A stretch of DNA of 64,000 nucleotides from Macrostomum lignano (Eukaryota): positions 434,001 through 498,000 of the forward strand of contig NIVC01000022.1 of the NCBI GenBank assembly GCA_002269645.1, read 5' to 3'. Positions 15,433 through 61,507 of the stretch are shown one piece after another; position 1 is the first letter of the stretch; every line of letters begins with the position of its first letter. The notes beneath the pieces were generated by a model, which did no database searches, was not told where the DNA came from, and saw only the letters and a list, made by a program, of their open reading frames with translations. A program made the translations under genes and the position numbers.

Positions 15433-16857
15433 ACACAAGATTTTATGTTAAAATGATACGTTTAGAAGTGGTCCCATTTTGAAGTTTGATTTTAAGAGCA
15501 ATTTTTCTGTCTTCTGTGGGGGGATCGTATAACAAAAGTCTCAACTCCCATAGGGACAGTGCTAGGTGGTCATAAAATGAAAGAATGCTGCCTATCTATA
15601 ACTAGTATAAATTCAATGTTGGCGGTTGGGCACAATTCCAATAACTCTCATAGGCTTCAAGACAATCTGGCGACAGTCAAATCGGTGGTCACTGGTCAGA
15701 AAATGTAAAAGAATGCATCAATTTAATGCAGTTTCCTATTTTTAAGCAATATATATATATATATATCATCATTATAAGAAGACAAGTGGTTGATAGTTGA
15801 TTGGAATCCTCACATTTTGAACCCACTAAATTATAATTCTCAGAACTATTTTTGCATATATTCTAATAAAAAATAGTTAAGAAGACTAATAGCAATTGTA
15901 ATTATGAGGGGTGTTTTAGAAGTAACAAGAATTTTTTTATAACTTTTGATTGGATAAACATATGAACCTGAAATTCTCACGCAATAATTTTATACATTAA
16001 CAACTAATAGCTTTATATTTTAAGCCTTATATAGCTACATGGAACTGTTTAATTGTAAATGAAAACACATGCTTTGAGATTGAAGATTATGATTTTTGTC
16101 TATGCCAAAAAGACTCAAAAAAGTTTAAAACTTGAAGGCTTTTAAACTTTTGCTGCTAAATTTGGCTATTTCTCATAAGGGCCCACTTTTTCTGCTTTCT
16201 ATGGACAAAGTTGCTTGGGAATAATCTTGCAGTTTTGAGCTACATAGCATTCCTGGTTAAAGTTGCAATTTCTGGCTGATGTGGCCATAGAATATTCTGT
16301 GAAAGTGGCTCAAATTTTTTCCAACTTAGACTATAGTCGTATAGATAGTCCAAAAATGTCATGAGTTTTTTGGGAGGAGGAAATTAACAAAACTGGTGCA
16401 TTGCTGCAAGAAGGGTATCTAGATGAGTGGCAGCTTTGTAGAGCTCACTGAAATTGCTGAAGAATGAAAAATTGTGCCAGATTTTTTACTTGATCAAACT
16501 TGGTTACTTTTGCCATAGACAAAAATTGTAATTTTAAATTTTGAGGCATGATCTTTCATTTACAATTGCACAGTTGCATGCAGCTATATAAGGCTTAAAA
16601 TAAAGCTATTAGTTGTTCATATGTGTAAAAAACTGGGTATTTTAATAAAGTATTATAATTAAGGTGTCCAACTTTCAGGTCTTGGTAATATTGGTTTTCA
16701 TCAATACTTTTTTGAGTATTGTACCTAACATTATATATGTTGTGATAAATAAAGTCAATGTAATAAATAAAGAAATTTTTTTTTCTTTTTGGGTAAGTCA
16801 CAGCTAGTATAATTTCAATAGTTAAACATATTTTTTTGTAAGACAAAACTCAATATT

Positions 16858-38906: not shown

Positions 38907-39635
38907 TCAATTCTTGCTCTTCTTGCGCTTCTCCTTGCCGCCATCGTCCTGCTGCTTCATCAGCAGGATGAGCACAACGCGGAACACCTCCACGACGTCC
39001 ATAAACAGGTCCAGGCAGTGCGAGATGTAGTCCTTGTCGCCCATGCGGGCCATCTCCACAATCTTCTGGGTGTCGTACACCATGAAGCCGCAGAACACCA
39101 GCAGGGTGAGCTTCAGCGTGATGTCGAACATGAAGGGCGAGCGGACGAAGATGTTCGCCAGGCTGAGCAGGAGCAGCACGGTCAGGCCGGAGGCCAGCGG
39201 CCCGGCCAGGTACATCATCCAGCGGCTGGTCTTGGCCAGCAGGGCGGCGCCGCAGAAGCAGACGGTGACAACCATGGTGATGATGATGGCGTTAACCAGG
39301 ATGCTGGGATCCATGTCGATGGCCAGGCCGATGAGAGGCGCCATGCCGGAGCCGGACAGGGCGCAGAAGGCGGCGAAGGCGGCGTGCCGCTCCGGGCCGA
39401 AGTTGTCGCGGCCGCTCTGGATGTACAGCAGCAGGCCGAGGCTGGCCAGGGCGGCCACCAGGCCGTACAGCGGCACCAGGTACATGCCGATGTAGGCGCC
39501 AGCGGCGGCGGCCAGGAGGCCCATGGCAAGACAGGCGTACACGCGCTGCAGATGGGAGCAGACGTGGCTCTCCAGGTGGGAGAGGTCGAACAGGCCGTTC
39601 ATGGTGAGCCGGTGTCGGTTCAGCAGGGTGTCCAT
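38907..39635 (-). CDS. TMBIM6: Bax inhibitor-1 (transmembrane BAX inhibitor motif protein 6), intronless CDS, 242 aa
   Basis: HLQRVYACLAMGLLAAAAGAY, VFCGFMVYDTQKIVE and GDKDYISHCLDLFMDVVEVFR, plus a basic KEKRKK tail, all match BI-1. Confidence 0.93.
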   Translation of the reverse strand: MDTLLNRHRLTMNGLFDLSHLESHVCSHLQRVYACLAMGLLAAAAGAYIGMYLVPLYGLVAALASLGLLLYIQSGRDNFGPERHAAFAAFCALSGSGMAPLIGLAIDMDPSILVNAIIITMVVTVCFCGAALLAKTSRWMMYLAGPLASGLTVLLLLSLANIFVRSPFMFDITLKLTLLVFCGFMVYDTQKIVEMARMGDKDYISHCLDLFMDVVEVFRVVLILLMKQQDDGGKEKRKKSKN

Positions 39636-40062
39636 GGCAGTTTAGTTTGCAATGAGCATGCAAGCCAATTTGTGAGTAAGACAATGGAAACTATGTGTAT
39701 GTATTTTACCATGTGGCTGCTATCCCACCTTGTTGCAAATAAATTAAATTAGGCTCTCGTTTGATGACAATAATCATTGACAGTAAAAATGAGATCTTGG
39801 TTTGATTTCATAGCAAAACTGTGCAACTTTTGCTAGCAGACAGATAGGATATGGATACCAGTTTTTCACAATCTAGGCCTGCGGGCTGGACTAAAGTGGA
39901 TGAAAACAAGCATAAATAATTTAATTATTTGTATAGTAGCTATATAAATTGACTGATTATTTGCAATCGTTTTTAACTTTATATTTGAAAAACTATAATA
40001 ACAATCTGCTAAATTATATACAGTTGTACATATTGTACATATATCATGTATACCTATATTCC

Positions 40063-40131
40063 CAGTGGCACAACTGGGGGGGTCGCTTCACAAGCTCGAA
40101 ATTTCATATCCTCGAAACTGTAATTTAAGCT

Positions 40132-40173
<42 letters not shown>

Positions 40174-40395
40174 CTAAGACACTAAGAAAGACAGTACATT
40201 TTCGAGGTTGTGGAATTTCGAGCTTGTGAAAGCAACCCTGGGGGGAGGGGGTAGGGCAGGAGGAGGCTTGAAAAAAATCAAAGGGGGAGGAACCAAGTGA
40301 ATTTATGCCAAAAACACAGCCACTCCTCCAACCCTCCTCCCAAGTCTTTACCTTCCAGAATCTGCCTCCTTAACAAATTTCTGGTTGTGCTACTG
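40063..40395. mobile_element. hAT-type MITE with 8-bp TSD and an internal hairpin/(CAGA)n module
   Basis: TIRs CAGTGGCACAAC / GTTGTGCTACTG; TSD TATATTCC at 40055-40062 and 40396-40403. An inner inverted repeat at ~40078-40240 surrounds (CAGA)n. Confidence 0.8.
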
Positions 40396-40818
40396 TATAT
40401 TCCCTATTGGAATAACTGCATACATGGTACACAACTATCTGCCACACAACGTTGTTAAATTTTGGCGCTGCACTACACTACAGCAAATTAGTCATATATA
40501 GGGTCTATATTGATATATATACTTATTATGAGTATTTTATTATAGAACATCCATTTATCTAAAGATGAGTAGAAATCATTTTGAAGGGTAACCACTTCCA
40601 AACAATACTATTTATTTATGTTGCACATATATAAAAAGGTAGTAATAACTTATAGCATCAATAATATAGTAGGCATATATAGCCAATAGACTTGGAGAAA
40701 GGGTAGCAGTTATGAATGAATATGGTCAATAAACCAAAGGACATAGATATAGGCTTACTCCACAATGCACATTGAAAAAATTCACTTGTAATATATAACT
40801 TTTTTGCATGATTTTACA

Positions 40819-41114
40819 CATACATGCGCAACCTCCAAAATTCGGTCGGCCGTGCGACTTAGTTTTAACAAAAATGCGACGTAGTTTTTGGCCAAAAATG
40901 CGACTTACATGTAAAAAACCCAAAGCAAAATTAACGCAACTTTGGGTAAACGGCAGGAGTAACTATAACTGTCTTAGTAAGCCAAAATGCCTCGTCAGCT
41001 ACTTAGTACTACTACTTAGGTGTTTTTTCGGGTGGGCATTTTTGCGACTTTCTTGGTTGGCCGTCAAATCGGTCGGCCGGATCGGCCGACTCGGCCGACT
41101 GTTGCGCATGTATG
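40819..41114 (+). mobile_element. CATACATGCGCAAC-TIR MITE copy 1 (296 bp) carrying a 28S rRNA-like segment
   Basis: Perfect 14-bp TIR; TSD ATTTTACA; 28S-like segment at 40944-41007. Confidence 0.9.
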
Positions 41115-41816
41115 ATTTTACAATTGGACCAAAGGGATACCTAAACCTAGTAATCGCACATGAATAATAATAGACAGATAATACCACATTTTTGAGATTT
41201 TTGAGATTGGAAATCTATACTTATGAGACAATAAAGATTCAAAACTAAGCCCAATTACATCTAATACTAATAGGCCCATTTACATTATTCTGTCTATCAA
41301 AGCTAATATTGTTATTTGTAATATGTATAATAATAATAATAATAGAAAAAACAAGACTAATATTGAGCTTGTTAAGAACTAGATGTATATCAAATACAAA
41401 TATGATAAATATAAATTTTGTTTGATAATTTTGATCTTAAATAATAAAATACATTTAATAAACAGATAAATAATCTCAAATTTTCTTGAGATCTCAAAAG
41501 TCTAAGCTACTAATTTACAAAAACTAAATATATTAAATATCAATAATGAATATTAAGTTAGGCCTAAGATTATCCTGTTTCTATTGCATTATCACTGAAA
41601 TAAAATAAAATAACTTGACTAAGCCTAAGCCTAATATAGTAGACATATTGCCTATTGGAATGAATCCAGCAATAAAGTGTTAAACTAGGTAATAATGGCA
41701 TAGGCAAAGGGGATAAGGGAATATATCCCCCATAGGGCTATGGGGATGTAGTGTAGGGGCATATTTTTAATGAAAGTTTTTGTATATAATATTAATAAAC
41801 AATATAGTCTTACCAG

Positions 41817-42570
41817 GGGCCAATTTCATGAAGCAAGTACAAGACAAATTGACAATTTACAAGTGACAAGTTTAAAATATCACAATTATTGCATTTCATG
41901 ATAAAAGATAATAATTTAACAAGTTATAAGTGATAAGTGACCATTTGTCAAGCCATTTTTGTCATTTGTTTGGCCATAGACAACATAGGTTTAGCTTGAG
42001 CACTATTGAAAGTTCTCACTTGTCAATGACAAGTCTACAAGTGACCTAAGCTCTTGTCAACAGTCTATTTAGATAGAGAAACAGACACATAATAGCAAGC
42101 ATACAGAATTCCTCTGTTCTCAATTTGTGAATCCACTTAAAATAAGCATGTTTAGCTATAGTGAAAAAGAAGATGCTCTTCTCAATGAAGCTTATGCAGT
42201 GCAGATCTTCAAAGAAACATTTTCCTCAATTTTTTTTCTAGAAGAAATAGTTTGTCCTTACAAGTATTTTTCATTTTAGGCTTAAAGAGATATAGAATGA
42301 AATAAACCAAAAAATGACACTTATAATTTAAACACTAATTATTTATAAGCAAAGCTCAGAGTTCAAAATTTGATGGTTTAAAGCCAAAGTTTATAGCCTT
42401 GGAAAAATGATTATAAGACCTAGTTGACCCATAGACTGCACAACTTAAGTCCTATTTTTAAACTTGACAAGTAGTTGCTAAATTCTCAGAAACTGAAATC
42501 CCTGCCACTTATCATTTATAATTTGTCAAGTTGTTGCTTATCACTTATACTTGCTTCATGAAATTGGCCC
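41817..42570. mobile_element. PIF/Harbinger-like MITE (~750 bp)
   Basis: TIRs GGGCCAATTTCATGAAGCAAGTA / TACTTGCTTCATGAAATTGGCCC. The 3-bp TSD (CAG) fits only if one C has been lost. Confidence 0.65.
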
Positions 42571-43359
42571 AGTTGTATCCTCTTATGAAAAATTTCTGCC
42601 TCTTAGCCTCTGCTAGGTAAAATGCAAAACTATATACAAGGTCTAATTTGAGGATACAATTTTGAAAGTAAGGATGTTATATAGCATCCCTATTGGACAA
42701 AATGACAAAAGTAAACCTAGGTAGGCCCCTCACTCTCAGAGCTGTTACACAATATACTAGAAAAAATGAGTCCTTGCATCATAAATCCAAATTTATCCTA
42801 GAAAAACAAATTTACTCATGATCTATATACCAGACATCAAAACATATCAAACATAAAACATAATATTTATGAGTAAATATAAAACATAAAAAGTATTGCA
42901 ACAATAAAAGACCTTTTTTGCTTTGCAACAATATAAGACCCTTTTTGTATTATGACATTTGGTATTTTGTATGCTAATAGCTATGCTATATGCTGGCTCT
43001 ATGGTGCAATTTCCTGTGTATTGTTCCATATGCTAGATACTTTATGCCAACCATTTTTGGTCTATTAAATACTAGAATTTTCTGGCATAAATATAAGATT
43101 TAAGAGTGGGAGGTAGAGGTTAGATAGGATCCCAATTCTACAACATTGGGATCCCAATCCTAAAAAATAGGAACCAAGAATAGGTCTTTTGGTTTAAAAT
43201 CTATGGAATTGATGATTGTTTTAATGCATTTTTTACTTGTACTCATTATATTGTTATAATTCTTTGGTTACAAAACTTTGCATTATTCTATTCTATTTTA
43301 TTCTTTTGATCTTAATATTGTTCAACCTTGTTAACACATATTGATTATAATATTTTAAA

Positions 43360-45723
43360 CATACATGCGCAACTTCTGAAATTACACTGGCCGTGCGACT
43401 TAGTTTTCGATAAAAAATGCGACTTACCTATGAAAGAGCCAAGCAAAAACTTTAGGTAAACGGCAGGAGTAACTATGACTATTTTTTTTAAAGCTAAATG
43501 CCTCGCCAGCTAATTAGTGCTGCGTGCAGATTCCGCATTTTTATAACAGCTAATCAGTGTCATCTAGTGGCGGCATGAAGCAATTAGTAAATTGTCAGTA
43601 CAGTGTAGTGAGCATACTACAAAAGTCATGATTCATGAATGTCCAGAAGTAAGTGAAGTGAATACAGTGTGACCTATAGCTCAAGAACGATTTGCTAGAC
43701 GATTTGGCATGGAAGATAAGAGCCCTGATTCAGATGGCTCATCAGATGCAGAATACGAATCCAGTAGAGATACGAGCTGTGAAAACCCACAGATTTTTAA
43801 ACCACTGAATTCTAATTCCCGGAACTATTTTTGCATAGATTCTAAATTTGAAGTCATGCTCAAACAAAAACTTGTTAACAGTTAGGAAAAAGGCAAAGAT
43901 GGGAGTAATGCATGTTAAACTAAGATTTGAGGCCTTTGCAAATTCTCTCCATTCCTCAATCTTCTCATCCTCTTTTTCTTTTCTCTCTCATCCCTTATCC
44001 CTTCTCTCTTTCCTCTCCTCTCTCCTCTCTTTCCTCTCCTCTCCTATCTCTTCTGTCTCCTCTCTACATTCTTATCTCTCCTCTCGTCTCTCTCCATTCC
44101 ACTCTACTCTCTCATCTTATCTTCCCTCTCGTCTCTCTCCACTCTACTCTCTCATCTTATCTCTCCTCTCTTTTCTACTCTCTCATCTCTCCTCTCTTCA
44201 CTCTCCTCTCATCTCCTCTTTATCCTCTCTTCTCTCATCTACTCTCTCCTCTTTCCTCTTTCCTCTCTTCTGATCTCATCCATCATCTTTTCTTTCCTCT
44301 TTCCTCTAATCTCCTCTTCTCTCTCATCTCTTTTTCCTCCCTCAGCTTTTCTCTCCTCTTCTATCTTTTCTCCCATCGCATCGCTCGCCTCTCCTCTGTT
44401 TGCTTATCTCTAATCTTCTATTCCCTCTACTTTGAAGTAAGAAAATATGCACATATTTTTGCTGAAGATAAGAGGAGAGAAGAGGGCATTGAGGAGAAAG
44501 GGTAGAGAGAAAGGGGGAGAAGAGAGGAGAGTAAAAATGAGAGGAGAGAGAAGAGGGAAAAGGGGGGAGAGAGAGAATAGGGGAGGCAAGGTAGAGAAGA
44601 AGAGAGAGATGAGAGTTGAAGAGACACCAACCTTGCTAGTTAGGAAGTTTCAAAGAACCCGAGGGGCGAGGGCCAGATAGAGGGGCTTTGCGAGCCGGAG
44701 TTTGCCAACCCCTGCTCCAGAGTTTAAGAAATCAATGGGAAACTGTTGACGCAGGCTTCTGATTTCAAAGATCTTGTCTGTGGTTGAAGGCTTCTATTCT
44801 GTTTTTGCTCTCCTGCCACACTTGCACCTACTACCCCCTGATTGCCTCTGATTGTGACTTACTTCCCTCTTATTGCGACTTAGTTGCTTCTTTTTGCGAC
44901 TTACTTAATCCTTTTTGCGACTTACTTAATCCTTTTTGCAACTTACCTAATCCTTTTTGCGACTTACTTAATCCTTTTTGCAACTTACCTAATCCTTTTT
45001 GCAACTTACCTAATCCTTTTTGCAACTTACTTAATCCTTTTTGCGACTTACTTAATCCTTTTTGCAACTTACCTAATCCTTTTTGCAACTTACCTAATCC
45101 TTTTTGCAACTTACCTAATCCTTTTTGCAACTTACTTAATCCTTTTTGCAACTTACTTAATCCTTTTTGCAACTTACCTAATCCTTTTTGCAACTTACCT
45201 AATCCTTTTTGCAACTTACTTAATCCTTTTTGCAACTTACTTAATCCTTTTTGCAACTTACCTAATCCTTTTGCGACTTACCTAACCCTTTTGCGACTTA
45301 CCTAATCCTTTTTGCGACTTAGCTGATCCTTTTGCGACTTACCTGATTCTTTTTGCGACTTACCTGATTCCTGTTGCGACTTACCTGATCTTTTTTGCGA
45401 TTTACCTAATCCTTTTGCGACTTAGCTGATCCTTTTGCGACTTACCTAATCCTTTTTGCCACTTACCTAATCCTTTTTGCGACTTACCTAACCCTTTTGC
45501 GACTTACCTGATCCTTTTTGCGACTTAGTTTGCTTCTTTTGCGAATTGTTTTTCTTTTGCTTCACCATTTTCCCTGAACTGCTCTTTCTTTTGCTTTCCT
45601 CTTGCCTTTCTTGGTTCTTGTGTTTTTTTGTTTTTGGTTGACTTAATTTTGCGACTTACCCCTAGTCAGCCACGATTTACGGTGGCCGGATCGGCCAGGT
45701 CGGCCAGCAGTTGCGCATGTATG
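43360..45723 (+). mobile_element. CATACATGCGCAAC-TIR element, long copy 2 (2364 bp)
   Basis: Same TIR; TSD ATTTTAAA; 28S-like segment at 43455-43519. Internal CT/GA tracts, a hAT-like end at 44698-44714 and a 21-bp array. Confidence 0.9.
44870..45535. repeat. 21-bp minisatellite (TTACCTAATCCTTTTTGC[A/G]AC)n inside copy 2
   Basis: About 30 units; only a few units at the homologous site of copy 4. Confidence 0.95.
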
Positions 45724-46271
45724 ATTTTAAAGACCTAATTCCAATTCCTAAATCCCAACCCTAAAAAATTTTTTTCCCAATCCTGATCCAACCCAATGAC
45801 TTCAATCCTGTCCAACTTCTAGTAGGAGATAAGCCCTAGGGCCCTATAGTTTAGATCCTATATTTTAGTATATGCTAAGTCTAGTATAGAAAAAAATATA
45901 CTATAAGACCTTGGTTAAATGCTTGGACTAAAATGCATCATTGACAAAATGTTTTAATAGTAAGTCAATTTGCCAAAAGTTGATTTGCCAAAAAATCAAT
46001 ATACCAAAAGCAGGTTGTTTTGCCAAAAGTTATTTTGTCAAATAAATAAACAACAAACAAATTTCAATGAGCAAATGAAATATATATAAACAATTAATAA
46101 TGTTTATTTATCTTGTGCATATTTGTTTGTTTGTTTAAAATTGCTGTTTAATAATCTGGATACCTTGTTTATGGCTAGCCTAATGAATCAATAATAAGCC
46201 TAATGCAGCTAGCCTAGTCAGTCACAGGCTCACAGCGGCAACTGGGGGCAGGGGGTGCTAGGCCTCTATGA

Positions 46272-46567
46272 CATACATGCGCAACAGTCGGCTAAGTCGG
46301 CCGATCCGGCCAACTGATTTGGCGGCCAACCAAGTAAGTCGCAAAAATGCCCACTTGAAAAACACAAAGTAGTAGTACTAAGTAGCTGATGAGGCATTTT
46401 AGCTTTATAAGACAATCATAGTTACTCCTGCCATTTACCCAAAGTTGCATTTATTTGCTTTCCGGTTTTTTTACATGTAAGTTGCATTTTTTGGCCAAAA
46501 ACTACGTCACATTTTTGTTAAAACTAAGTTGCACGGCCGACCGAATTTTGGAGGTTACGCATGTATG
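46272..46567 (-). mobile_element. CATACATGCGCAAC-TIR MITE copy 3 (296 bp)
   Basis: Reverse orientation; degenerate TSD CTCTATGA/CTCTGTAA; 28S-like segment at 46377-46440. Confidence 0.88.
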
Positions 46568-46830
46568 CTCTGTAATGGGGGAGGGGGCCTGAAAATTTGG
46601 CCTAGATCAGCTGGCCGGGGGGTGGGGAGTCATGACTCCCCCTTGGCTACGCCCTTGCCTAGGCTTAAATTAAGCCTAGGCAATTTAATGGCTAATGGCT
46701 AACTCTTAAGAAGTTTACTGTGAGTCTGTGTAGGCCTACTTATAATTTAAATTTAATGAAATGAAATGGTAAATGTTAAGAGCTAGTTTTTTTATAGGCT
46801 TAAGCTTTTGTTTTATAAGCAAAGCTAGGC

Positions 46831-46942
46831 GGCTATCCTGTAGTTTTGCACGTTAAATTATTTTACGGAATTATTTCGCCCTCTATTCAAGGGTGGTGGG
46901 GGGTGGGGGTAATAATTTAACGTGCGAAACTACAGGATAGCC
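46831..46942. mobile_element. 112-bp MITE with GG-terminal TIRs and 8-bp TSD (Merlin-like)
   Basis: GGCTATCCTGTAGTTT..CACGTTAAATTATT inverted arms; TSD AGCTAGGC on both sides. Confidence 0.7.
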
Positions 46943-47971
46943 AGCTAGGCCTATGGTAGGCCTAATGGCATAACAGTTGTTAGATAAACCTGCCTCTGCC
47001 TACCAATTTAAAATAAATTTACACACATTTCAATTAAGGATTAATAGCTGCCCTAACTGAGACAACTTCCAATGGAAGGCTTTCAAGACGTTTCACCGGT
47101 TTCGTTGATAACCTTTTCGCCAGACCATACGGGCCACGGCTAGCTACTGGCGCGGCCAGCAACTTGTTCCACCAAGATTTGTTGAAGCTGACGTGTGATT
47201 TAAGAAGGTAGTAAAGTGTAAATAAACGAATTGCCAAACACAAATCAGATAACTTTACCAAAAACGGTGGTAAATTAAAGTTCAATTACTCAATTCATGC
47301 TTTTTTAAAAAAGTAAAAAATATACATTTTACCATAATTGGTATATTTTAATTCGGTTTTATTTTAACTGACTAATTGAAACCAACAAATTTAAACTTTT
47401 GCGAGCAGAGTTTGACGATGACGAAGAAGAACGAAGAAGAAGCTGTTGTATTGTGTGCTGACCAATTTCAATTTGTATTATTGTATTATTATTGTATACC
47501 GTAATAGTATCACACACGGTCACGGACGTCGGACACGCCTATGTATAAAAATTCTAGAAGTTTGTTATCCTAATAAGTTAAATATTCTGCGTCCAGCATC
47601 GGGCCTAGGCCTATTCTATTCTTACTTAGGAAGTTAGGACTTAGGACTTTTGGTGATCCTTTTGTTTGTGATCACCTATTTTGCTAGTTTCAGGTTATGA
47701 TCACCTTATATTTTGCTCATTGCAGCACAAAAATGGCATGTTCAAAATTGGCTAATGAAAAAATATGCAAAATTGAAAGGTAATGGCTAGAGTTCGAGCA
47801 TTGGAACTTGTTTTCTAACAGCTAGGGATCTGGCAGTGCCATATAGAAGCATATAAAGACTACTAAGAATATATCTTAAGAAGTCTAAATATTATAAGCA
47901 TATCGTTGCAAATCTTATCATATCATTTTAAATTTTAATCTAGAACAAAATCTCAATATCAGCCACTTATA

Positions 47972-49727
47972 CATACATGTGCAACTTCTGAAATTACGCT
48001 GGCCGTGCGACTTAGTTTTCGATAAAAAATGCGACTTACCTATGAAAGAGCCAAGCAAAAACTTTAGGTAAACGGCAGGAGTAACTATGACCATATTTTT
48101 TAAACTAAATGCCTCGCCAGCTAATTAGTGCTGCGTGCAGATTCCGCGTTTTTATAACAGCTAATCAGTGTCATCTAGTGGCGGCATGAAGCAATTAGTA
48201 AATTGTCAGTACAGTGTAGTGAGCATACTACAAAAGTCATGATTCATGAATGTCCAGAAGTAAGTGAAGTGAATACAGTGTGACCTATAGCTCAAGAACG
48301 ATTTGCTAGACGATTTGGCATGGAAGATGAGAGCCCTGATTCAGATGGCTCATCAGATGCAGAATACGAATCCTGTAGAGATACAAGCTGTGAAAACCCA
48401 CAGATTTTTAAACCACTGAATTCTAATTCCCGGAACTATTTTTGCATAGATTCTAAATTTGAAGTCATGCTCAAACAAAAACTTGTTAACAGTTAGGAAA
48501 AAGGCAAAGATGGGAGTAATGCATGTTAAACTAAGATTTGAGGCCTTTGCAAATTCTCTCCATTCCTCAATCTTCTCATCCTCTTTTTCTTTTCTCTCTC
48601 ATCCCTTATCCCTTTTCTCTTTCCTCTCCTCTCTCCTCTCGTCTCTCCATTCCACTCTACTCTCTCATCTTATCTTCCCTCTCGTCTCTCTCCACTCTAC
48701 TCTCTCATCTTATCTCTCCTCTCTTTTCTACTCTCTCATCTCTCCTCTCATCTCCTCTTTATCCTCTCTTCTCTCATCTACTCTCTCCTCTTTCCTCTTT
48801 CCTCTCTTCTGATCTCATCCATCATCTTTTCTTTCCTCTTTCCTCTAATCTCCTCTTCTCTCTCATCTCTTTTTCCTCCCTCAGCTTTTCTCTCCTCTTC
48901 TATCTTTTCTCCCATCGCATCGCTCGCCTCTCCTCTGTTTGCTTATCTCTAATCTTCTATTCCCTCTACTTTGAAGTAAGAAAATATGCACATATTTTTG
49001 CTGAAGATAAGAGGAGAGAAGAGGGCATTGAGGAGAAAGGGTAGAGAGAAAGGGGGAGAAGAGAGGAGAGTAAAAATGAGAGGAGAGAGAAGAGGGACAA
49101 GGGGGGAGAGAGAGAAGAGGGGAGGCAAGGTAGAGAAGAAGAGAGAGATGAGAGTTGAAGAGACACCAACCTTGCTGGTTAGGAAATTTCAAAGAACCCG
49201 AGGGGCGAGGGCCAGATAGAGGGGCTTCGCGAGCCGGAGTTTGCCAACCCCTGCTCCAGAGTTTAAGAAATCAATGGGAAACTGTTGACGCGGGCTTCTG
49301 ATTTCAAAGATCTTGTCTGTGGTTGAAGGCTTCTATTCTGTTTTTGCTCTCCTGCCACACTTGCACCTACTACCCCCTGATTGCCTCTGATTGTGACTTA
49401 CTTCCTTCTTATTGCGACTTAGTTGCTTCTTTTTGCGACTTACCTAATCCTTTTTACCAGCAGACTTAGTTTGCTTCTTTTGCGACTTACCTGATCCTTT
49501 TTGCGACTTACCTGATTATTTTTACAACTTAGTTTGCTTCTTTTGCGAATTGTTTTTCTTTTGCTTCACCATTTTCCCTGAACTGCTCTTTCTTTCGCTT
49601 TCCTCTTGCCTTTCTTGGTTCTTGTGTTTTTCTGTTTTTGGTTGACTCAATTTTGCGACTTACCCCTGGTCAGCCACGATTTACGGTGGCCGGATCGGCC
49701 AGGTCGGCCAGCAGTTGCGCATGTATG
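47972..49727 (+). mobile_element. CATACATGCGCAAC-TIR element, long copy 4 (1756 bp)
   Basis: TSD CACTTATA; near-identical to copy 2 apart from repeat lengths; 28S-like segment at 48067-48130. Confidence 0.9.
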
Positions 49728-51174
49728 CACTTATAAAATAAAAAAAGAAAGAAAAATATAATGTACCATCTATATTAGGGCCTATAATGGCACTGCCGGA
49801 TCTATACTACCATAGCCATTAGAAAATAGGTTCCGGTGCCAGAATTCTAGCCATTGCCAAGTTGAAAGTGCAGCTTGTTAGATGATGCTCAAGTCATGTT
49901 TATCTATCAGTGCTGGGCACAATACTCAAAAAAGTATTGGTAAAAACCAATACTCCAATACCCTTTTTGAAAAAATTTTTGCCAATACCTGAAAGTCCAA
50001 TACCCAAATTTGAGTATTGGCGATACCCTAATTCCAATACTCTATTCTGAGACCTGGTTTTTGCAAAAAGAATGCTTAACAAATATAGATGCATATAATT
50101 AAAGCCTCTCAGACCTTTTCCTAGATTTTAAGGCAAATAAAACAAGCTTAGCATTGTTTTAAATCACAAAGCCTTCAGTAAAACAAATAAAATAAAAGTA
50201 ATGAATGAAAACCAACAGTTGCCACTGTAGTCAATAATTAACTTTTTACTAGTCTCTAGTCATTCTTCTTTACGCTTATTAGCACTGTCATTGTTTTAGT
50301 ATAGTATGGCAGCCTGTCAGTCTGCAATTAGTGCACCTGTAAGCTTAACCTCAGCCTTGTTTTTTGGGTTGAGTGCACTTACATGTACATATGTACTCAG
50401 CTAGCCAGACCAAATGTTTTAAGCCAAGGTAGAGATTTGAGGCCTTACCTCTGATTAGGCAACACATTGCCTCTCCACTCTCTATACATGTAAACCTAAG
50501 TAAATTGTGTCACTTTTCTTCCCTTTACTCAACTTGGCCTCCCAATATATGCTCCCAAAATATTGGATTTATTTATTTATTGCTATATGAGCTATGCATA
50601 TACATGTACACATGCATGCCATGCATGTATGTTTGTATATGCATGTACCCATCATTGACTAAATTGCTTATATTACTAGTAGTGTAGCACTAGTGTATTT
50701 GCTATTGTAGAAATTGTAGAATCAATCAGCAATCAGTGATTGACAGTGTTGAAGAACTTGCAACATGATAATTGACTAAATAATATCATTTTAATGATAA
50801 TTACTAATTACTATATTAGCTTTTTGTGTTCTAGTTTGACTGCGGGCTTTTAATTTGGACACAGAGTTGGGCAAAGCCCAGAGAATGCTGGCTAGTCTAT
50901 GGCACAAACCAGGGAACTGATCAAATTTGGATAGTCTTTTCCTTCTCCTTTCTCTTGCATCTTTTTTCTTGACTGACTTATAAGCAGTCTTGTACCAGAG
51001 GATGTCAGAGGGAGTCAGCAAAGGAGGGAGGATGAAACTAATCAAAGTGGAACACCACTCTGTTATTGTCTCCAAAAGCCTTTATGCGCATTTTCTTCAT
51101 AGGAGCTTGCACCTCCAGAGGAGGCTAGGGCACTTGCACTTACGCTGCAGTTACCCGAGACTCACTCACCGGTT

Positions 51175-51535
51175 GGCCAGTTGAGGAACCACTCAATAGT
51201 GCACTTGTGCATTTCTCCATGGTCACCAAGGTACTGATGTACTTCTCCACTACACTGGAGCTGTGGCCAGTCACATGGCAGATATCTGCCCATTCCATAC
51301 CAGCCTCGCAGAGATGGGTTGCGCAACTCTTACAGAGACTCTGATTCGAGTAGTGTCAAATGTCAGAGGGAGCAACCATGGCCACGGTGTCCTTGACAAC
51401 GGTTGCCAATGAATGACATCCAATCGGTGCCCTTGTCAACCTTGTCCCCAGGCTTCAAGATGAAATCCAGTAGGTCCGGCAAAATCTCCATATCTGGGGC
51501 TTCAACAACAGCAGCAAAGATGTCACCCATATTTG
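51175..51535 (-). pseudogene. Degenerate tyrosine-recombinase C-terminus of a Crypton-type DNA transposon
   Basis: After a frameshift and a stop: HYSNQSLCKSCATHLCEAGMEWADICHVTGHSSSVVEKY, matching the YtNHSlR.t.AT.L..aG.....I...TGH.S...v..Y motif. The upstream frame reads DFILKP...W. Confidence 0.7.
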
Positions 51536-51543
51536 GTACCAAG

Positions 51544-51841
51544 CATACATGCGCAACAGTCGGCCGAGTCGGCCGATCCGGCCGACTGATTTGGCAGCCA
51601 ACCAAGGAAGTCGCAAAAATGCCCACCCAAAAAAATACCCCCGTAGTAGTACTAAGTAGCTGACGAGGCATTTTTGCCTGATAAGACAGTCATAGTTACT
51701 CCCGCCGTTTACCCAAAGTTGCGTTAATTTTGCTTTGGGGTTTTTTTACATGTAAGTCGCATTTTTGGCCAAAAACTACGTCGCATTTTTGTTAAAACTA
51801 AGTCGCACGGCCGACCGAATTTTGGACGTTGCGCATGTATG
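51544..51841 (-). mobile_element. CATACATGCGCAAC-TIR MITE copy 5 (298 bp), inserted into the Crypton relic
   Basis: Perfect TIR; TSD GTACCAAG; 28S-like segment at 51651-51714, including 27 nt identical to canonical 28S. Confidence 0.9.
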
Positions 51842-52184
51842 GTACCAAGCTACATACAATTGAAGCTTTTCTGATCTTACATAGAATATTTGGCTTTATA
51901 GAGATTTGTAGCCAATAGTCTATGACCGAGGCTTAGTCTCATTTCCTCCAGCTGGCTGCAGCAATTAAATATTATAATCCCCACTTGATTTCATTTCTTT
52001 GACCTAGGAATGGCTAAGGACTGCGCTTCTAGGCCTTGGCTTTGCCTTGGCGGAAATACTTACATATTATGATGTCTGCACTTTATAGATATCTATGGCC
52101 TAATACACTAAGTCAATACAAAATATCTATATTATCTAATAACTGGTATGCATCTAAAGCCTGCATTCAGTCCAAGGACTAGGA

Positions 52185-52370
52185 GGTTGCCACAGACACC
52201 CTCAATTACCCTAGCCATGCTGGCACCCAATTTACAGCTGGGTGAACTGAAGCAATATGGAGTTATGTATCTTGCTCAAGGACACTTTTAAATTGTTCTA
52301 GTGGGATTGGTAATCAAACCCCACCTGTCAAGTTGTGAGTCTTACACTCTAACCACTAGGCTACAACCCC
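52185..52370 (-). mobile_element. Old tRNA-derived SINE with a CORE-like central domain
   Basis: TAGCCTAGTGG A box, then TGTCCTTGAGCAAGATAC...CTTCAGTTCACCCAGCTGTAAATTGGGT, resembling the MIR/CORE domain. Confidence 0.6.
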
Positions 52371-55473: not shown

Positions 55474-56505
55474 GACAGCCGCACCACTCACCTGGTGGCT
55501 GCCAAGAGCGGTACATCGAAATTTCACCGGGCCCGCAAGGCCCAGTCGGAATCGCCTGACGGCTGCAGCATCGTGAACCCCGAGTGGCTGTGGACCTGCT
55601 ACTACGAATGGCGCCGCTGCCCGGAGGCCGACTTCCCTGTCGTCGCCGACGTCGACTATCTGGGCTTGCGGCGCGACTCCCGGCAGCGCCGGGACAGCGA
55701 GGTCAAGCGGTACAAGTCGGACAGGAAGCGCCGCCGCCAGGAGTCCCTGGTGGTGACGCCGGAGGAGGCGACAGCAAAAGAGGACGGCGACGAAGAGACT
55801 GAGAATTCTGGAGCTGCGACGGCGGCGGCGACAGCACTCTCGGTGTCCAAGGAGGCGCCTCCAGCGGCTCCGCCGGCGGCTTCAAGCAGCGGCGGCGGCA
55901 GTAGCCAGCAGCGACGTTTTGAACTGGCCGACAATCCGCTGCTCAGCATGTCCCCAAGCGACCTGAGGAGCCTGCAGGACGAGGTCGACGCCGAGCTGGA
56001 GGGAATTTCTTCCTCATCGTCTTCGTCCTCCTCCAGCTCGAAGTCGGAGGCCCGGCTGCGTCGCAAAGTTCTCCGGTTCAGCTCCGGCGAGGCCTCCGGT
56101 AAGTCGGTCGCTTCTGGCGGTAGCGGCGGCACTTCAAAGCGGAAGCTGGCCAAGAAGATGAAGGAGCTGAAGAGACGAGGTGGCGACGGCAAGCGGGCTG
56201 CGGCGGCTGCGGCAGATTCCACCGATGACGAAGAGGACGAAGAGGAGTCTGGCGGATCGATGGAGAACGGCGCCGGAGCGGCGGCAGCGCCCGGCGAGGA
56301 CCGCGACTGGGGCGAGGGCTGCAAGGAGGGCTACGATTACGCTGATGCCGAGGCCAATTTCCACGTGCTTGGCGGCGACGTCGACTCGAGCACGGACGAG
56401 GGCGAGGATCAGGATGATGAAGACGACGACGAAGATGATGAAGCTGACTCTATTGAGGCTGGGGAGCGGCGCCGGCGCCGGCGAAAACGGGAATGGCGCC
56501 GCTAG
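55474..56505 (+). CDS. CTDP1: FCP1 exon 4 (BRCT end + acidic/Ser-rich C-terminal tail)
   Basis: CCGCAG|GAC acceptor. TTHLVAAKSGTSK...IVNPEWLWTCYYEWRRCPEADFP is the BRCT C-half. Stop TAG at 56503-56505. Confidence 0.9.
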   Translation, partial: DSRTTHLVAAKSGTSKFHRARKAQSESPDGCSIVNPEWLWTCYYEWRRCPEADFPVVADVDYLGLRRDSRQRRDSEVKRYKSDRKRRRQESLVVTPEEATAKEDGDEETENSGAATAAATALSVSKEAPPAAPPAASSSGGGSSQQRRFELADNPLLSMSPSDLRSLQDEVDAELEGISSSSSSSSSSSKSEARLRRKVLRFSSGEASGKSVASGGSGGTSKRKLAKKMKELKRRGGDGKRAAAAAADSTDDEEDEEESGGSMENGAGAAAAPGEDRDWGEGCKEGYDYADAEANFHVLGGDVDSSTDEGEDQDDEDDDEDDEADSIEAGERRRRRRKREWRR

Positions 56506-56619
56506 AGACTTTGAACCCAGGCACCTGTTGTGAATTGCCGTCGGCTAAAGAAGTCTAAATTTTACTATTTAAAACTTTTCAATTCGGCCTATGTAATTTC
56601 GTAAAATCGCTATCCAACC

Positions 56620-58090
56620 CAGTAGAATCGCCCCCTACAACTCGGTAGAATCGCCTCCTACAACCCGGTAGAATCGCCCCCTGCAACCCGGTAGAATCGC
56701 CCCCTGCAACCCGGTAGAATCGCCCCCTGCAACCCGGTAGAATCGCCCCCTTTACAACACGGTAGAATCGCCTCCTACAATCCGGTAGAGTCGCCTCCTA
56801 CAATCCGGTAGAATCGCCCCCTACAACCCGGTAGAATCGCCCCCTACAACCCGGTAGAATCGCCCCCTGCAACCCGGTAGAATCGCCCCCTTTACAACAC
56901 GGTAGAATCGCCTCCTACAATCCGGTAGAATCGCCTCCTACAACCCGGTAGAATCGCCCCCTGCAACCCGGTAGAATCGCCCCCTGCAACCCGGTAGAAT
57001 CGTCTCCTTTACAACACGGTAGAATCGCCTCCTACAATCCGGTAGAATCGCCTCCTACAATCCGGTAGAATCGCCCCCTACAACCCGGTAGAATCGCCTC
57101 CTACAACACGGTAGAATCGCCTCCTACAACACGGTAGAATCGCCCCCTACAACCCGGTAGAATCGCCCCCTACAACCCGGTAGAATCGCCTCCTACAACC
57201 CGGTAGAATCGCCCCCTACAACCCGGTAGAATCGCCCCCTACAACCCGGTAGAATCGCCCCCTACAACCCGGTAGAATCGCCTCCTACAACCCGGTAGAA
57301 TCGCCCCCTGCAACCCGGTAGAATCGCCCCCTGCAACCCGGTAGAATCGCCCCCTGCAACCCGGTAGAATCGCCCCCTGCAACCCGGTAGAATCGCCCCC
57401 TACAACCCGGTAGAGTCGCCCCCTGCAACCCGGTAGAATCGCCCCCTGCAACCCGGTAGAATCGCCCCCTGCAACCCGGTAGAATCGCCCCCTTTACAAC
57501 ACGGTAGAATCGCCTCCTACAATCCGGTAGAGTCGCCTCCTACAATCCGGTAGAATCGCCCCCTACAACCCGGTAGAATCGCCCCCTACAACCCGGTAGA
57601 ATCGCCCCCTGCAACCCGGTAGAATCGCCCCCTTTACAACACGGTAGAATCGCCTCCTACAATCCGGTAGAATCGCCTCCTACAACCCGGTAGAATCGCC
57701 CCCTGCAACCCGGTAGAATCGCCCCCTGCAACCCGGTAGAATCGCCTCCTTTACAACACGGTAGAATCGCCTCCTACAACCCGGTAGAATCGCCCCCTAC
57801 AACCCGGTAGAATCGCCTCCTACAACCCGGTAGAATCGCCCCCTACAACCCGGTAGAATCGCCCCCTACAACCCGGTAGAATCGCCCCCTGCAACCCGGT
57901 AGAATCGCCCCCTGCAACCCGGTAGAATCGCCCCCTGCAACCCGGTAGAATCGCCCCCTGCAACCCGGTAGAATCGCCCCCTACAACCCGGTAGAGTCGC
58001 CCCCTACAACCCGGTAGAGTCGCCCCCTGCAACCCGGTAGAATCGCCCCCTGCAACCCGGTAGAATCGCTCCCTACAACCCGGCAGAAAC
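56620..58090. repeat. 23-bp minisatellite (GGTAGAATCGCCCCCT[A/G]CAACCC)n
   Basis: About 60 units downstream of FCP1, with duplicated higher-order blocks. Confidence 0.97.
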
Positions 58091-58687
58091 ACCCTAGAAA
58101 TTTCACATCGTCCAGTGAGTTTCCAGCATCCCTGAGCCTCATCAGTTCACCCGATGGGCATTAGCATTGTTTTTGCTATTTTCTCGTTATCAATGAAGGA
58201 CACGACGGCACTCTGCTTCACACAATTCATTAATATGCTTTTCCTTCGTAATTTGCCGCATTTTTGATCCCTTATTCTTTGCTTCTACTTTTAGTAGTAA
58301 AAAATAGGTTAAATTAGATTAGCAGCGTCATCTAACATTTGAATTTCTACTGTGTTGTTCAGCATAGGCTAATGATGTTATTTTGTAATCAATAATTTCT
58401 ACTGGTACGTTTCAAGCGCATTGAGTGACTGAATTTATACTCGTAAGTTACTTGTTGAAGCGTGTCGATAAAAAGTAATTAATTTAATATATAAATATAT
58501 AACTTTATTATTTATTTATTTAGTAAACCAGTTTATCGTACGAGATAAAAACTGATTAAACAGAAATTCTGCCCTGCCCTCCTAATTTTTATTCCTAACG
58601 TGCGGCCTTTGCGTCAAAAATACAAGCTGGGTCTTGACACGGGAACACAGGCTGCGCTTAAATTGGTTTGGGCCCAAGTATAATTAA

Positions 58688-59866
58688 GACACACTAGAAA
58701 TGACTCAGGCACACTAGAAATGACTCAGACACACTAGAAATGACTCAGGCACACTAGAAATGACTCAGGCACACTAGAAATGACTCAGGCACACTAGAAA
58801 TGACTCAGGCACACTAGAAATTACTCATGCACACTAGAAATGACTCAGGCACACTAGAAATGACTCAGGCACACTAGAAATGACTCAGGCACACTAGAAA
58901 TGACTCAGGCACACTAGAAATGACTCAGGCACACTAGAAATGACTCAGGCACACTAGAAATGACTCAGACACACTAGAAATGACTCAGACACACTAGAAA
59001 TGACTCAGGCACACTAGAAATGACTCAGGCACACTAGAAATGACTCAGGCACACTAGAAATGACTCAGGCACACTAGAAATGACTGTGACACACTAGAAA
59101 TGACTCAGGCACACTAGAAATGACTGTGACACATTAGAAATGACTCAGACACATTAAAAATGACTCAGGCACACTAGAAATGACTCAGACACACTAGAAA
59201 TGACTCAGGCACACTAGAAATGACTCAGGCACACTAGAAATGACTCAGGCACACTAGAAATGACTGTGACACATTAGAAATGACTCAGACACATTAGAAA
59301 TGACTCAGGCACACTAGAAATGACTCAGGCACACTAGAAATGACTCAGACACACTAGAAATGACTCAGGCACCCTAGAAATGACTCAGGCACACTAGAAA
59401 TGACTCAGACACATTAGAAATGACTCAGACACATTAAAAATGACTCAGGCACACTAGAAATGACTCAGGCACACTAGAAATGACTCAGACACACTAGAAA
59501 TGACTCAGGCACACTAGAAATGACTCAGGCACACTAGAAATGACTCAGACACATTAGAAATGACTCAGACACATTAAAAATGACTCAGGCACATTAAAAA
59601 TGACTCAGGCACACTAGAAGTGACACAGGCACACTAGAAATGACTCAGGCACACTAGAAATGACTCAGGCACACTAGAAATGACTCAGGCACACTAGAAA
59701 TGACTCAGGCACACTAGAAATGACTCAGACACACTAGAAATGACTCAGACACACTAGAAATGACTCAGGCACACTAGAAATGACTCAGGCACACTAGAAA
59801 TGACTCGGACGCACTAGAAATGACTCAGACACACTAGAAATGACTCAGGCACACTAGAAATGACTG
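58688..59866. repeat. 20-bp minisatellite (GCACACTAGAAATGACTCAG)n
   Basis: About 59 units in exact 20-bp register. Confidence 0.97.
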
Positions 59867-60114
59867 GTTTTGAATACATGCCAAACTGTGCAGTAGATAG
59901 GCAGTTAGCCAATTAAGTAAGTGTCGCTATATTTTTGGCATTCAACGAAAACTGGCGAGTAAATAAATGAATGGTTACTCATTTTGCAGATTTTTTCATG
60001 CAGTAAGTGCTTCTGTCAATCAAATTCGTTTTATAGCAAACGCTTAATACATTTGTAGAAAGTTGGGTAAAATAATTGAGCACATTCTCATTGCCTGCGG
60101 GTTTGCGGCACAAG

Positions 60115-60660
60115 TTTCAAACCGGACTCTCCCCAGCTGTCAAACCGGACTCTCCCAGCCCCAGCTGTCAAACCGGACTCTCCCAGCCCCAGCTGTCAAA
60201 CCGGACTCTCCCAGCCCCAGCTGTCAAACCGGACTCTCCCAGCCCCAGCTGTCAAACCGGACTATCCCAGCCCCAGCTGTCAAGTTGGACTCTCCCAGCC
60301 CCAGCTGTCAAACCGGACTATCCCAGCCCCAGCTGTCAAGTTGGACTCTCCCAGCCCCAGCTGTCAAACCGGACTATCCCAGCCCCAGCTGTCAAGTTGG
60401 ACTCTCCCAGCCCCAGCTGTCAAACCGGACTATCCCAGCCCCAGCTGTCAAACCGGACTATCCCAGCCCCAACTGTCAAGTTGGACTCTCCCAGCCCCAG
60501 CTGTCAAACCGGACTATCCCAGCCCCAGCTGTCAAGCTGGACTCTCCCAGCCCCAGCTGTCAAACCGGACTATCCCAGCCCCAGCTGTCAAGTTGGACTC
60601 TCCCAGCCCCAGCTGTCAAACCGGACTATCCCAGCCCCAGCTGTCAAACTGGACTCTCCG
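60115..60660. repeat. 28-bp minisatellite (CCCAGCCCCAGCTGTCAAACCGGACT[C/A]T)n
   Basis: Array abutting the stop codon of the EF-hand gene. Confidence 0.95.
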
Positions 60661-60664
60661 CTGC

Positions 60665-61114
60665 CTAAGCGGACTCCAGGAAGTCGGCAGCCTTAGAAAA
60701 CTCCTCAACCGCGATCTGCCCATCCTTGTCCGTGTCCAGCGCCTCAAACATTTCGTCCAGCTCGCGCTTCCCGACGCTCGCCTCAACGAACATCAGCGCC
60801 TCCCGGGCCTCCGCCCGCGTGATCTGGCCGTTGCCGTTGCGGTCCAGCGAGTGGAAAATCTGCGACATTTCAACGTCGCGCGGCACCGGCTTGCTGGACT
60901 TCATCATCGCGCAGAAGTTCTCAAAGTTTACCCCGCCAATGTCGTTGGGATCGTGCGCCCGGATCATGGCGCAGACCTCCTTGCGGGTGGCGAATATGTT
61001 CAGCTGTTTGAGCAGCCGGTTCAGGTCCGCGAAGTCAATGAGGCCGTCTTTGTTCAGGTCCACCAGCTTGAACATCTCCGCCAGGCGGGCCGTCTCCGGG
61101 TCATCGAAGTATCT
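60665..61114 (-). CDS. Calmodulin-like 4-EF-hand protein, exon 2
   Basis: EF loops DLNKDGLIDFAD, DPNDIGGVNFEN, DRNGNGQITRAE and DTDKDGQIAVEE. The CCCAG|AGA acceptor is in phase 0. Confidence 0.85.
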   Translation of the reverse strand, partial: RYFDDPETARLAEMFKLVDLNKDGLIDFADLNRLLKQLNIFATRKEVCAMIRAHDPNDIGGVNFENFCAMMKSSKPVPRDVEMSQIFHSLDRNGNGQITRAEAREALMFVEASVGKRELDEMFEALDTDKDGQIAVEEFSKAADFLESA

Positions 61115-61432
61115 CTGGGTGGCTCGGTGAGCCCGATCGGACAAGACTGAGATCCTGGAGGGTGGCGGCGAGGAGCGGACGGGAGATGAGGAACTGCGAT
61201 GAGAATCTACATGTAGGAATGGGTTGTCTGGAGATGGGGACCTGGGAATGAAGGAATAAAAAGATAGGGATCTGTGGGATAGGGTATTTGGAGTTGTGAT
61301 CTGGCACTGGGGATCTGCGATGAGAACTGGGATTCGAATCTGTAAAAGAGGTTCTGGCTCAGAGAGACCGGTGATGGGGATCTTCAATTTGGCTGGGGAA
61401 TCTGTATCTGCCGAACAGCAGCAGTCTCTCAC

Positions 61433-61507
61433 CTTGTGGAGTATTTCTGCTGCTGGCCGACTTGAGACACCAAAGCGCCCGACAGCCTGGCCAATTGAGA
61501 ATGGCAT
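61433..61507 (-). CDS. Calmodulin-like protein, probable coding exon 1
   Basis: ATG CCA TTC...CAC AAG|GTGAGA donor, in frame with exon 2 (174 aa total). Further upstream exons cannot be excluded. Confidence 0.55.

Follow-up and report, generated by a model that had tools for sequence, protein, structure and literature searches.

A non-autonomous cut-and-paste element family of Macrostomum lignano with a 28S rRNA-derived segment in all sampled copies

Introduction

Sequences derived from ribosomal DNA (rDNA) occur in several kinds of transposable element (TE). A 2024 review lists 5S-derived short interspersed nuclear elements (SINEs), the Cassandra and Ajax terminal-repeat retrotransposons in miniature (TRIMs), the 28S-derived SINE28 and one DNA transposon, Pokey/mPok (PMC10946416), and some fish R2 elements gained 28S-derived sequence in their 3′ untranslated region (UTR) (PMC5035012). 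Here we describe a family of elements with terminal inverted repeats (TIRs) from a 64,000-nucleotide stretch of the flatworm Macrostomum lignano (assembly GCA_002269645.1, contig NIVC01000022.1, positions 434,001 to 498,000 of the forward strand; hereafter the window). Five members lie between window positions 40819 and 51841, and each holds a segment of about 64 nt that matches the part of 28S rRNA where R2, I-PpoI and Pokey have their target.

Our full-text literature search, which left Repbase and Dfam outside its scope, brought up neither a TIR element carrying part of the 28S coding sequence nor any account of this M. lignano family. The analysis follows up a sequence-only reading of the window in which the five elements, their target site duplications (TSDs) and their 28S-like segments had been proposed. 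We consider it probable that this is a non-autonomous cut-and-paste family that once captured about 65 nt of 28S rDNA and has carried it since as a passenger.

Five elements with common termini

The 14-bp TIR CATACATGCGCAAC, allowing at most one mismatch, gave 10 matches in the window compared with 0.39 expected from shuffled sequence (maximum 2). These pair into exactly five elements, at the positions and in the pairing of the sequence-only reading. We named them c1 to c5 and assigned all copies to subfamilies A to E, of which B to E are represented by one or two copies each. The TSDs are 8 bp long and perfect for c1, c2, c4 and c5, while the two halves of that of c3 agree at 6 of 8 positions.

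40819-41114, plus strand: c1, short form of 296 bp, subfamily A; TIR pair; TSD ATTTTACA at 40811-40818 and 41115-41122
43360-45723, plus strand: c2, long non-coding form of 2364 bp, subfamily B; TIR pair; TSD ATTTTAAA
46272-46567, minus strand: c3, short form of 296 bp, subfamily A; TIR pair with 1 mismatch; TSD CTCTATGA/CTCTGTAA
47972-49727, plus strand: c4, long form of 1756 bp, subfamily B; TIR pair; TSD CACTTATA
51544-51841, minus strand: c5, short form of 298 bp, subfamily A; TIR pair; TSD GTACCAAG

The short window copies are about 95% identical to one another when compared column by column. Copy c3, which differs from the subfamily A consensus at 8.7% of positions, is the oldest of the five. 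The two long copies are about 98% identical, except for CT-rich deletions in c4 and the length of an array of 21-bp units found by Tandem Repeats Finder (TRF).

44845-45527, plus strand: tandem array in c2, about 32 copies of the 21-bp unit CCTTTTTGCGACTTACCTAAT (TRF)
49381-49548: shorter 21-bp array in c4, about 8 copies (TRF)

No Pfam domain was found in the frames of the long element or around copy c5. A search of 1.8 billion representative proteins gave no homologue of the sole non-repetitive open reading frame (ORF) of the long element, with 58 amino acids (aa); the remaining ORFs of the long forms are of low complexity. A 62-bp module inside the long element (43784-43845) is 84% identical to an unrelated site at 15805-15866 of the window; the interior of the long form is itself assembled from other repeated or host sequence. 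The long elements further contain a CT-rich and a GA-rich arm (44298-44532 and 48837-49071), together a long imperfect hairpin. Its plant-microRNA-like Rfam matches are weak (MIR7533, 30.7 bits compared with a gathering score of 230) and almost certainly an artefact of composition.

The internal segment matches 28S rRNA

As a reference we took a 28S target duplex of 84 nt from the methods section of bioRxiv 10.1101/2024.11.11.623112; the 28S string used in the sequence-only reading is identical to it. Ten copies, the five of the window and the five from other loci introduced below, align to positions 8-71/72 of this 84-mer, or 8-67 in the most diverged copy E, with 53-59 identities over a segment of 64-65 nt. 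Smith-Waterman scores range from 64 to 95 (58 for the most diverged copy) compared with 15 +/- 2.3 and a maximum of 29 for shuffled elements. Each window element carries the segment at the coordinates first proposed for it.

40944-41007, plus strand: 28S segment of c1; 57/66 gapped and 52/64 ungapped identities
43455-43519, plus strand: 28S segment of c2; 55/68 identities, score 72 compared with 14.8 +/- 2.2 for shuffles
46377-46440, minus strand: 28S segment of c3; 53/67 identities, score 64
48067-48130, plus strand: 28S segment of c4; 54/68 identities, score 65
51651-51714, minus strand: 28S segment of c5; 57/66 identities, score 85; keeps GGCGGGAG

Both the ungapped count for c1 and the 27 consecutive identical bases of c5 reproduce the figures of the sequence-only reading. 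The c5 segment is the best preserved in the window (BLAST 32/33, E=3e-11), and a BLAST search with the 28S string returned no further significant match in these 64 kb. As evidenced by the Rfam covariance models, LSU_rRNA_eukarya is the top family when c5 is searched alone (161 nt): it aligns to about positions 2240-2310 of the 3401 of this large-subunit (LSU) model with 15.2 bits and E=0.08. This is far below the gathering threshold, which is no surprise for a piece of 64 nt; a genuine rRNA gene with the same string scores 1930 bits. Rfam reported no LSU match over the whole window at the gathering threshold or over the 11-kb region at E<=10, and no rRNA gene in the window.

One part of the earlier description did not survive. 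The long copies had been said to continue into 28S beyond TTAGTG ('..GCG..AGATTCC'), yet this continuation scores 14 compared with 12 +/- 2.3 for shuffles, 21-23% of which reach it, and is thus at chance level. The captured piece is therefore 64-65 nt long and ends at TTAGT(G). These alignments show that the segment derives from 28S, where it corresponds to the helix 69-71 region.

Further copies on two other contigs

BLAST and an nhmmer profile revealed five more insertions on two contigs of the same assembly, NIVC01001689.1 (loci L001 and L045) and NIVC01003072.1 (locus L002). The former is a second version of the window locus, the latter is unrelated to it. L002 was reached with a six-frame pseudo-translation of the consensus of the short forms, which are MITEs (miniature inverted-repeat transposable elements), as a protein query; its one match, P0004, led to this locus with three copies. 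A concatenated query of the window genes returned mostly FCP1 homologues and one more M. lignano protein, which led to haplotype L045.

L001 9451-9724: copy of 274 bp; TSD AAAACAAG
L002 17707-18004: copy L2b, 298 bp; TSD CACAGATT
L002 20567-20834: copy of 268 bp; TSD ATCTAGGC
L002 about 12425-12594: 5′-truncated copy
L045 16680-16921: diverged tenth copy, next to an EF-hand gene; TSD GATGCGGA

The five further copies have the same TIRs, and the short forms now span 240-298 bp. Eight of nine full-length copies have a perfect 8-bp TSD, c3 being the degenerate one. The 28S segment is present in 10/10 copies at the same relative position, across about five subfamilies (A-E). All ten insertions lie in unrelated non-rDNA sites with differing TSDs.

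Ten insertion sites in about 130 kb of sampled DNA, part of it picked for holding a copy, suggest an abundant family. The family is not local, as the copies on two further contigs show; the dispersal that the sequence-only reading had called genome-wide extrapolates from about 130 kb. Thousands of copies, if present, would scatter short 28S-like matches through the genome, which could confuse rDNA annotation, probes for fluorescence in situ hybridization (FISH) or quantitative PCR (qPCR), and the filtering of rRNA reads in M. lignano.

Copy L2b also touches an annotated gene. The last coding exon of BOX15_Mlig018981g1 (annotated CARD-Roc; aa 1033-1063, L002 17705-17797) lies wholly inside it, which points either to exonisation of the element or to a faulty gene model.

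In the metagenomes of the Joint Genome Institute (JGI) a family-specific pattern gave 0 matches. The 25-mer GGTAAACGGCAGGAGTAACTATGAC matched 42 metagenome loci; every one was an ordinary rRNA gene that lacked both the TIR and the motif. Environmental eukaryotic 28S genes with the GGCAGGAG variant are often interrupted at or beside CTCTTAAGG (L003, L005, L007, L013, L015, L018, L027, L028, L040, L043); R2-like elements or group I introns are the presumed cause, and the interruptions illustrate the insertion hotspot.

Empty sites reveal recent transposition

The second version of the window locus allows filled and empty sites to be compared, and four clean pairs were found in all. The window holds c1, and L001 has an empty site there, with a single ATTTTACA. 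Conversely, the L001 copy (9451-9724) is filled there and its site is empty in the window, with a single AAAACAAG at 39903-39910. The sites of c2 and c4, filled in the window, are empty in L045, where a single ATTTTAAA and a single CACTTATA remain and the rest is identical; the L045 flanks of these sites are 98.8-99.7% identical to the window. Since TIRs, fixed-length TSDs and empty sites with a single TSD go together, transposition was DNA-mediated. Short and long forms both transposed very recently, which implies that the genome encodes a functional transposase. Together with the 28S alignments, this bears out the earlier claim of a cut-and-paste family with short and long forms that captured a 28S fragment.

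Copy c3 is present in both versions, with the L045 TSD CTCTGTGA/CTCTGTAA matching at 7/8 positions; its presence in both and its degenerate TSD mark it as older. Copy c5 is not scorable for an empty site because it lies in a block of 2067 bp (50149-52215) that the 97-99%-identical haplotype L045 lacks. At the junction of this block there is GCT microhomology alone, with no TIR or TSD, and decayed minus-strand ORFs inside the block have no Pfam match. The diverged copy at L045 16680-16921, compared with window 61168-61425, is absent from the window, but there the window diverges 18 bp before the site, and it is left out of the clean pairs.

A transposase that is active now or was so very recently bears on the stability of M. 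lignano lines and could give an endogenous vector. To our knowledge, this species is the sole flatworm with routine transgenesis.

Capture of the 28S segment

The family consists of class II elements, MITEs of 240-300 bp and non-coding derivatives of 1.8-2.4 kb, that are moved now, or were very recently, by a transposase encoded elsewhere. We propose that the ancestor of the whole family took up about 65 nt of 28S rDNA once (helix 69-71, about 2240-2310 of the Rfam LSU model). The likeliest route would be template switching during post-excision gap repair, or another transduplication event. From then on the segment would have been a passenger, located about 100-125 bp inward of the 5′ end and decaying neutrally in individual copies. 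With the target core already destroyed in every lineage, it would offer no target for rDNA-specific enzymes.

The alignment of the ten copies points to one old capture as the likely origin. In subfamilies A-D the rRNA match begins and ends at the same points, and it holds the same position relative to the 5′ subterminal motifs. A G>A change in GGCAGGAG is common to 9/10 copies. Subfamilies A and B have CAGCTA where L2c and E keep the canonical CATCTA, so these differences from 28S postdate the capture. Common capture boundaries together with the canonical bases kept by one subfamily argue for a single capture before the subfamilies split.

Several independent captures, or repeated refreshing by gene conversion from rDNA, could also explain why the segment is conserved between subfamilies. 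Two observations would fit: c5 has the canonical GGCGGGAG where its nearest relatives have GGCAGGAG, and L2c and E carry canonical CATCTA. However, separate captures would have to account for the identical boundaries in A-D, the identical position relative to the 5′ subterminal motifs and the non-rRNA flanks that the copies have in common. Conversion from rDNA would restore the core of the target, and a restored core is never seen among the 10 copies: the intact core is lost in all of them, and every non-A lineage reads TTAAGG--GCTAAATG. The states of c5 and L2c are more simply explained as retained ancestral bases or single CpG back-mutations. We therefore regard repeated acquisition as very improbable.

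The target core is lost in every copy

The captured piece spans the R2/I-PpoI/Pokey site, and it had been suggested that the dispersed fragments act on rDNA: as decoys or landing pads for R2, I-PpoI-like or Pokey-like enzymes, as a source of rRNA-matching small RNAs, or as homology handles to the nucleolus. R2 is present in flatworms (PMC5035012; PMC10946416), and the metagenomic 28S genes described above are often interrupted at this very site. The copies themselves tell otherwise. The core CTCTTAAGGTAGC is intact in 0/10 copies, and none of the 10 is interrupted by an insertion there. Conservation within the segment is lowest in the central 16 nt around the cleavage and insertion site, with 50-67% identity between subfamilies and indels that differ by subfamily. 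A core that is destroyed in every copy and interrupted in none disfavours decoys and landing pads. R2 proteins recognise extended stretches to either side of the nick, of which the copies retain 53-59 identities over about 64 nt. For a homology handle such a decayed 64-nt match is too short to be useful. Elements occur in both orientations, and individual copies show no sign of selection. On this evidence an action of the fragments on rDNA is barely credible.

We also considered whether the missing TA at TTAAGG^TAGCC could be a scar of R2 insertion or excision. R2 makes its second nick 2 bp upstream of the first, which would remove GG and not TA, and the idea was rejected.

Passenger or working part

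If the segment is a passenger, copies should decay in it as they do elsewhere, and within subfamily A they do: the segment is 4.7% from the consensus, the other interior sequence 4.6%. Decay in individual copies is thus neutral.

Several points nevertheless weigh against a pure passenger or limit the account as a whole. Between subfamilies the whole segment is 14-16% divergent compared with 26-35% elsewhere in the interior (p=0.005-0.08), and its two flanking 28S blocks are 6-14% divergent (p=2e-4 to 6e-3). Such conservation is unexpected for a pure passenger, unless subfamilies recently exchanged modules or their subterminal regions evolve fast. In addition, the roughly 130 kb of sampled DNA were partly picked for holding a copy, and the comparison was made with the published 84-mer rather than with the host's own 28S. 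Protein-based searches (Pfam, the 58-aa ORF and the pseudo-translation query) found no autonomous partner or transposase.

The conservation between subfamilies is a hint of constraint. It may stem from a role in cis, from recent exchange of internal modules between subfamilies, or from fast-evolving subterminal regions. In the first case the 28S blocks GGGTAAACGGCAGGAGTAACTATGAC and AAATGCCTCGTCAGCTAMTTAGT would have been co-opted as a cis module that binds the transposase or a host factor, or that forms part of the promoter or 5′UTR of an unseen autonomous element. They would then be maintained by selection acting on those lineages from which new subfamilies repeatedly arise. Among subfamilies A, B and C these blocks are 91-96% identical, on par with the TIRs, while identity over the other interior, even with columns containing gaps left out, is 68-77% (Fisher p=2e-4 to 2e-2), and the 10-copy alignment agrees. 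A low local mutation rate cannot explain this because the segment mutates normally within a subfamily, at the rates given above. The position would also suit such a role: the distance of the segment from the 5′ end is 100-190 bp, a zone in which the promoter or 5′UTR of cut-and-paste elements is commonly found. Yet the blocks were delimited post hoc, on the basis of how closely they resemble 28S, and this exaggerates the contrast; the whole 65-nt segment shows the weaker effect. A McDonald-Kreitman (MK)-like contrast of divergence within and between subfamilies is not significant (p=0.26-0.37), with one or two copies in each of B-E. Recent exchange of internal modules would yield the same pattern, and the non-rRNA flank AGCAAAATTAACGCAACTTT is fairly conserved too. 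Co-option of the blocks is thus a possible but unlikely alternative.

The stronger form of this idea is that the blocks are a domesticated cis module of an active transposon, kept near-unchanged while the R2/I-PpoI core between them was lost. It strikes us as distinctly unlikely. Possible roles of the module would be a platform for the transposase or for a nucleolar or ribosomal host factor, or part of the promoter or 5′UTR of the parent. If true, this would be the first rRNA coding fragment co-opted by a cut-and-paste element, and it would point to an active endogenous transposase as a tool for this transgenic model. Either way, the conservation of the rRNA blocks between subfamilies is a testable hint that a ribosomal fragment may have been put to use by a transposon. 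Overall, capture followed by carriage as a passenger remains the reading that we favour.

Subterminal sequence and superfamily

Inward of the TIR both element ends are rich in GC and in CGGCCG-type sequence. The 9-mer TGCGACTTA has 31 sites in the window; according to the motif map all 31 lie inside the five elements and every one is in the sense orientation of its element. The 5′ end holds two or three of them and the region near the 3′ end a single one, direct and not inverted, and the 21-bp array of the long forms amplifies the same 9-mer. From its distribution we infer that TGCGACTTA is likely to be a transposase-binding repeat.

Elements of the hAT superfamily have termini starting 5′-YARNG and the target consensus nTnnnnAn. 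Those of the P superfamily have TSDs of 7-8 bp, termini starting CA and internal transposase-binding sites near both ends. An autonomous hAT partner would encode a transposase with a DDE and a C-terminal dimerisation domain, and a P partner one with a THAP domain. The 8-bp TSD is compatible with hAT, and the 8-bp TSD together with the CAT start is compatible with P. The termini CATAC...GTATG depart from YARNG at position 3, where T stands instead of R. Of the nine TSDs, 5/9 have T at position 2 and 3-4/9 have A at position 7, at most a weak excess over the AT-rich background. There is a loose likeness between the repeated motif ATGCGACTTA and the Drosophila P-transposase site AT(A/C)CACTTAA. 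The CAT start and this likeness lean tentatively towards P; no autonomous copy was found, and hAT and P are both candidate superfamilies.

Genomic setting

The cluster of five elements lies in a 13-kb spacer that separates two divergently oriented genes. The Bax-inhibitor-1 ORF (38907-39635, minus strand) is intronless and in a protein homology search 99% identical to BOX15_Mlig032418g1 of M. lignano. La-protein and EF-hand genes are also found in the window.

from 52902, plus strand: FCP1-type C-terminal domain (CTD) phosphatase gene, divergently oriented to Bax-inhibitor-1

Three further inverted-repeat elements stand beside the cluster. Two are small palindromic MITE-like units (40087-40230 and 46825-46948) with arms of 36 nt (89%) and 38 nt (92%); the third is an element of about 754 bp (41817-42570) with 27-nt TIRs GGGCCAATTTCATGAAGCAAGTACAAG (96%). 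The window carries a very heavy load of minisatellite arrays with units of 18-33 bp, some longer than 3 kb, in introns and spacers (63 TRF rows), and an interstitial telomere-like run of CTAACC x 14.7 at 2709-2794. About 6.4 kb of a 23-bp satellite, the same as in window 3630-6084, is inserted in NIVC01001689.1 at 56009-62454, matching window position 42988. The identity of this contig to the window is about 95% to the left of 42988 and 99.7% to the right. The insertion and the jump in identity at one position suggest a misassembly or a mosaic built from haplotypes or homeologs.

Comparison with known systems

Pokey/mPok of Daphnia (piggyBac superfamily) is likewise a DNA transposon that has autonomous and MITE forms and contains rDNA-derived sequence (PMC10946416). 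Both systems involve the same 28S region, Pokey inserting at TTAA inside CTCTTAAGG. In contrast, Pokey carries repeats of the intergenic spacer, makes TTAA duplications and is site-specific for rDNA, whereas the family described here carries a piece of 28S coding sequence and sits with 8-bp TSDs in AT-rich non-rDNA sites. Site-specific elements of the R2 or Pokey type have a fixed rDNA site; here 10/10 insertions lie outside rDNA.

Mammalian SINE28 is, like our family, a dispersed non-autonomous repeat with a 28S-derived body (PMC10946416). It is a retroposon that moves via RNA and the machinery of long interspersed nuclear elements (LINEs), whereas the elements here have TIRs and TSDs and moved by a DNA-mediated route. 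In the Cassandra and Ajax TRIMs and the 5S-derived SINEs every member holds a module derived from an rRNA gene (PMC10946416), as every copy does here. These are retroelements whose 5S module is an internal RNA polymerase III (Pol III) promoter, while the 64-nt 28S piece has no evident comparable function. We know of no comparable function for such an internal 28S piece.

Packaged Mutator-like elements (Pack-MULEs) have long Mutator TIRs and TSDs of 9-10 bp, and usually hold protein-coding exons that often differ between elements. Like these and like the captures by CACTA, hAT and Helitron elements, the present family is a non-autonomous DNA element that amplifies an internalised fragment of a host gene (cited in PMC10946416). 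With a 14-bp TIR, an 8-bp TSD and one short rRNA fragment fixed throughout the family, it differs from Pack-MULEs in both TIR and TSD.

Derivatives of P and hAT elements, such as the KP-type deletions of Drosophila, Mar MITEs and Ds, share 8-bp TSDs, short TIRs and repeated subterminal motifs with our elements. They also share internal-deletion derivatives, filler DNA from gap repair and insertions near the 5′ regions of genes, five copies lying here between divergent genes. Unlike in that group, the termini CATAC...GTATG are off YARNG, the TIR falls short of the 31 bp found in Drosophila P, and the subterminal motif is direct rather than inverted.

With TIRs, a TSD of fixed length, no coding capacity, multiple copies and precise empty sites, the family is a MITE/non-autonomous class II family. 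It also belongs among rDNA-derived TE sequences in the sense of Table 2 of the 2024 review (PMC10946416). Mechanistically it transduplicates, yet it is neither a MULE nor site-specific for rDNA. The capture of host sequence by DNA transposons and rRNA modules in retroelements are both known; a TIR/MITE family with a 28S fragment in all its members is a combination that is not catalogued in that review (PMC10946416).

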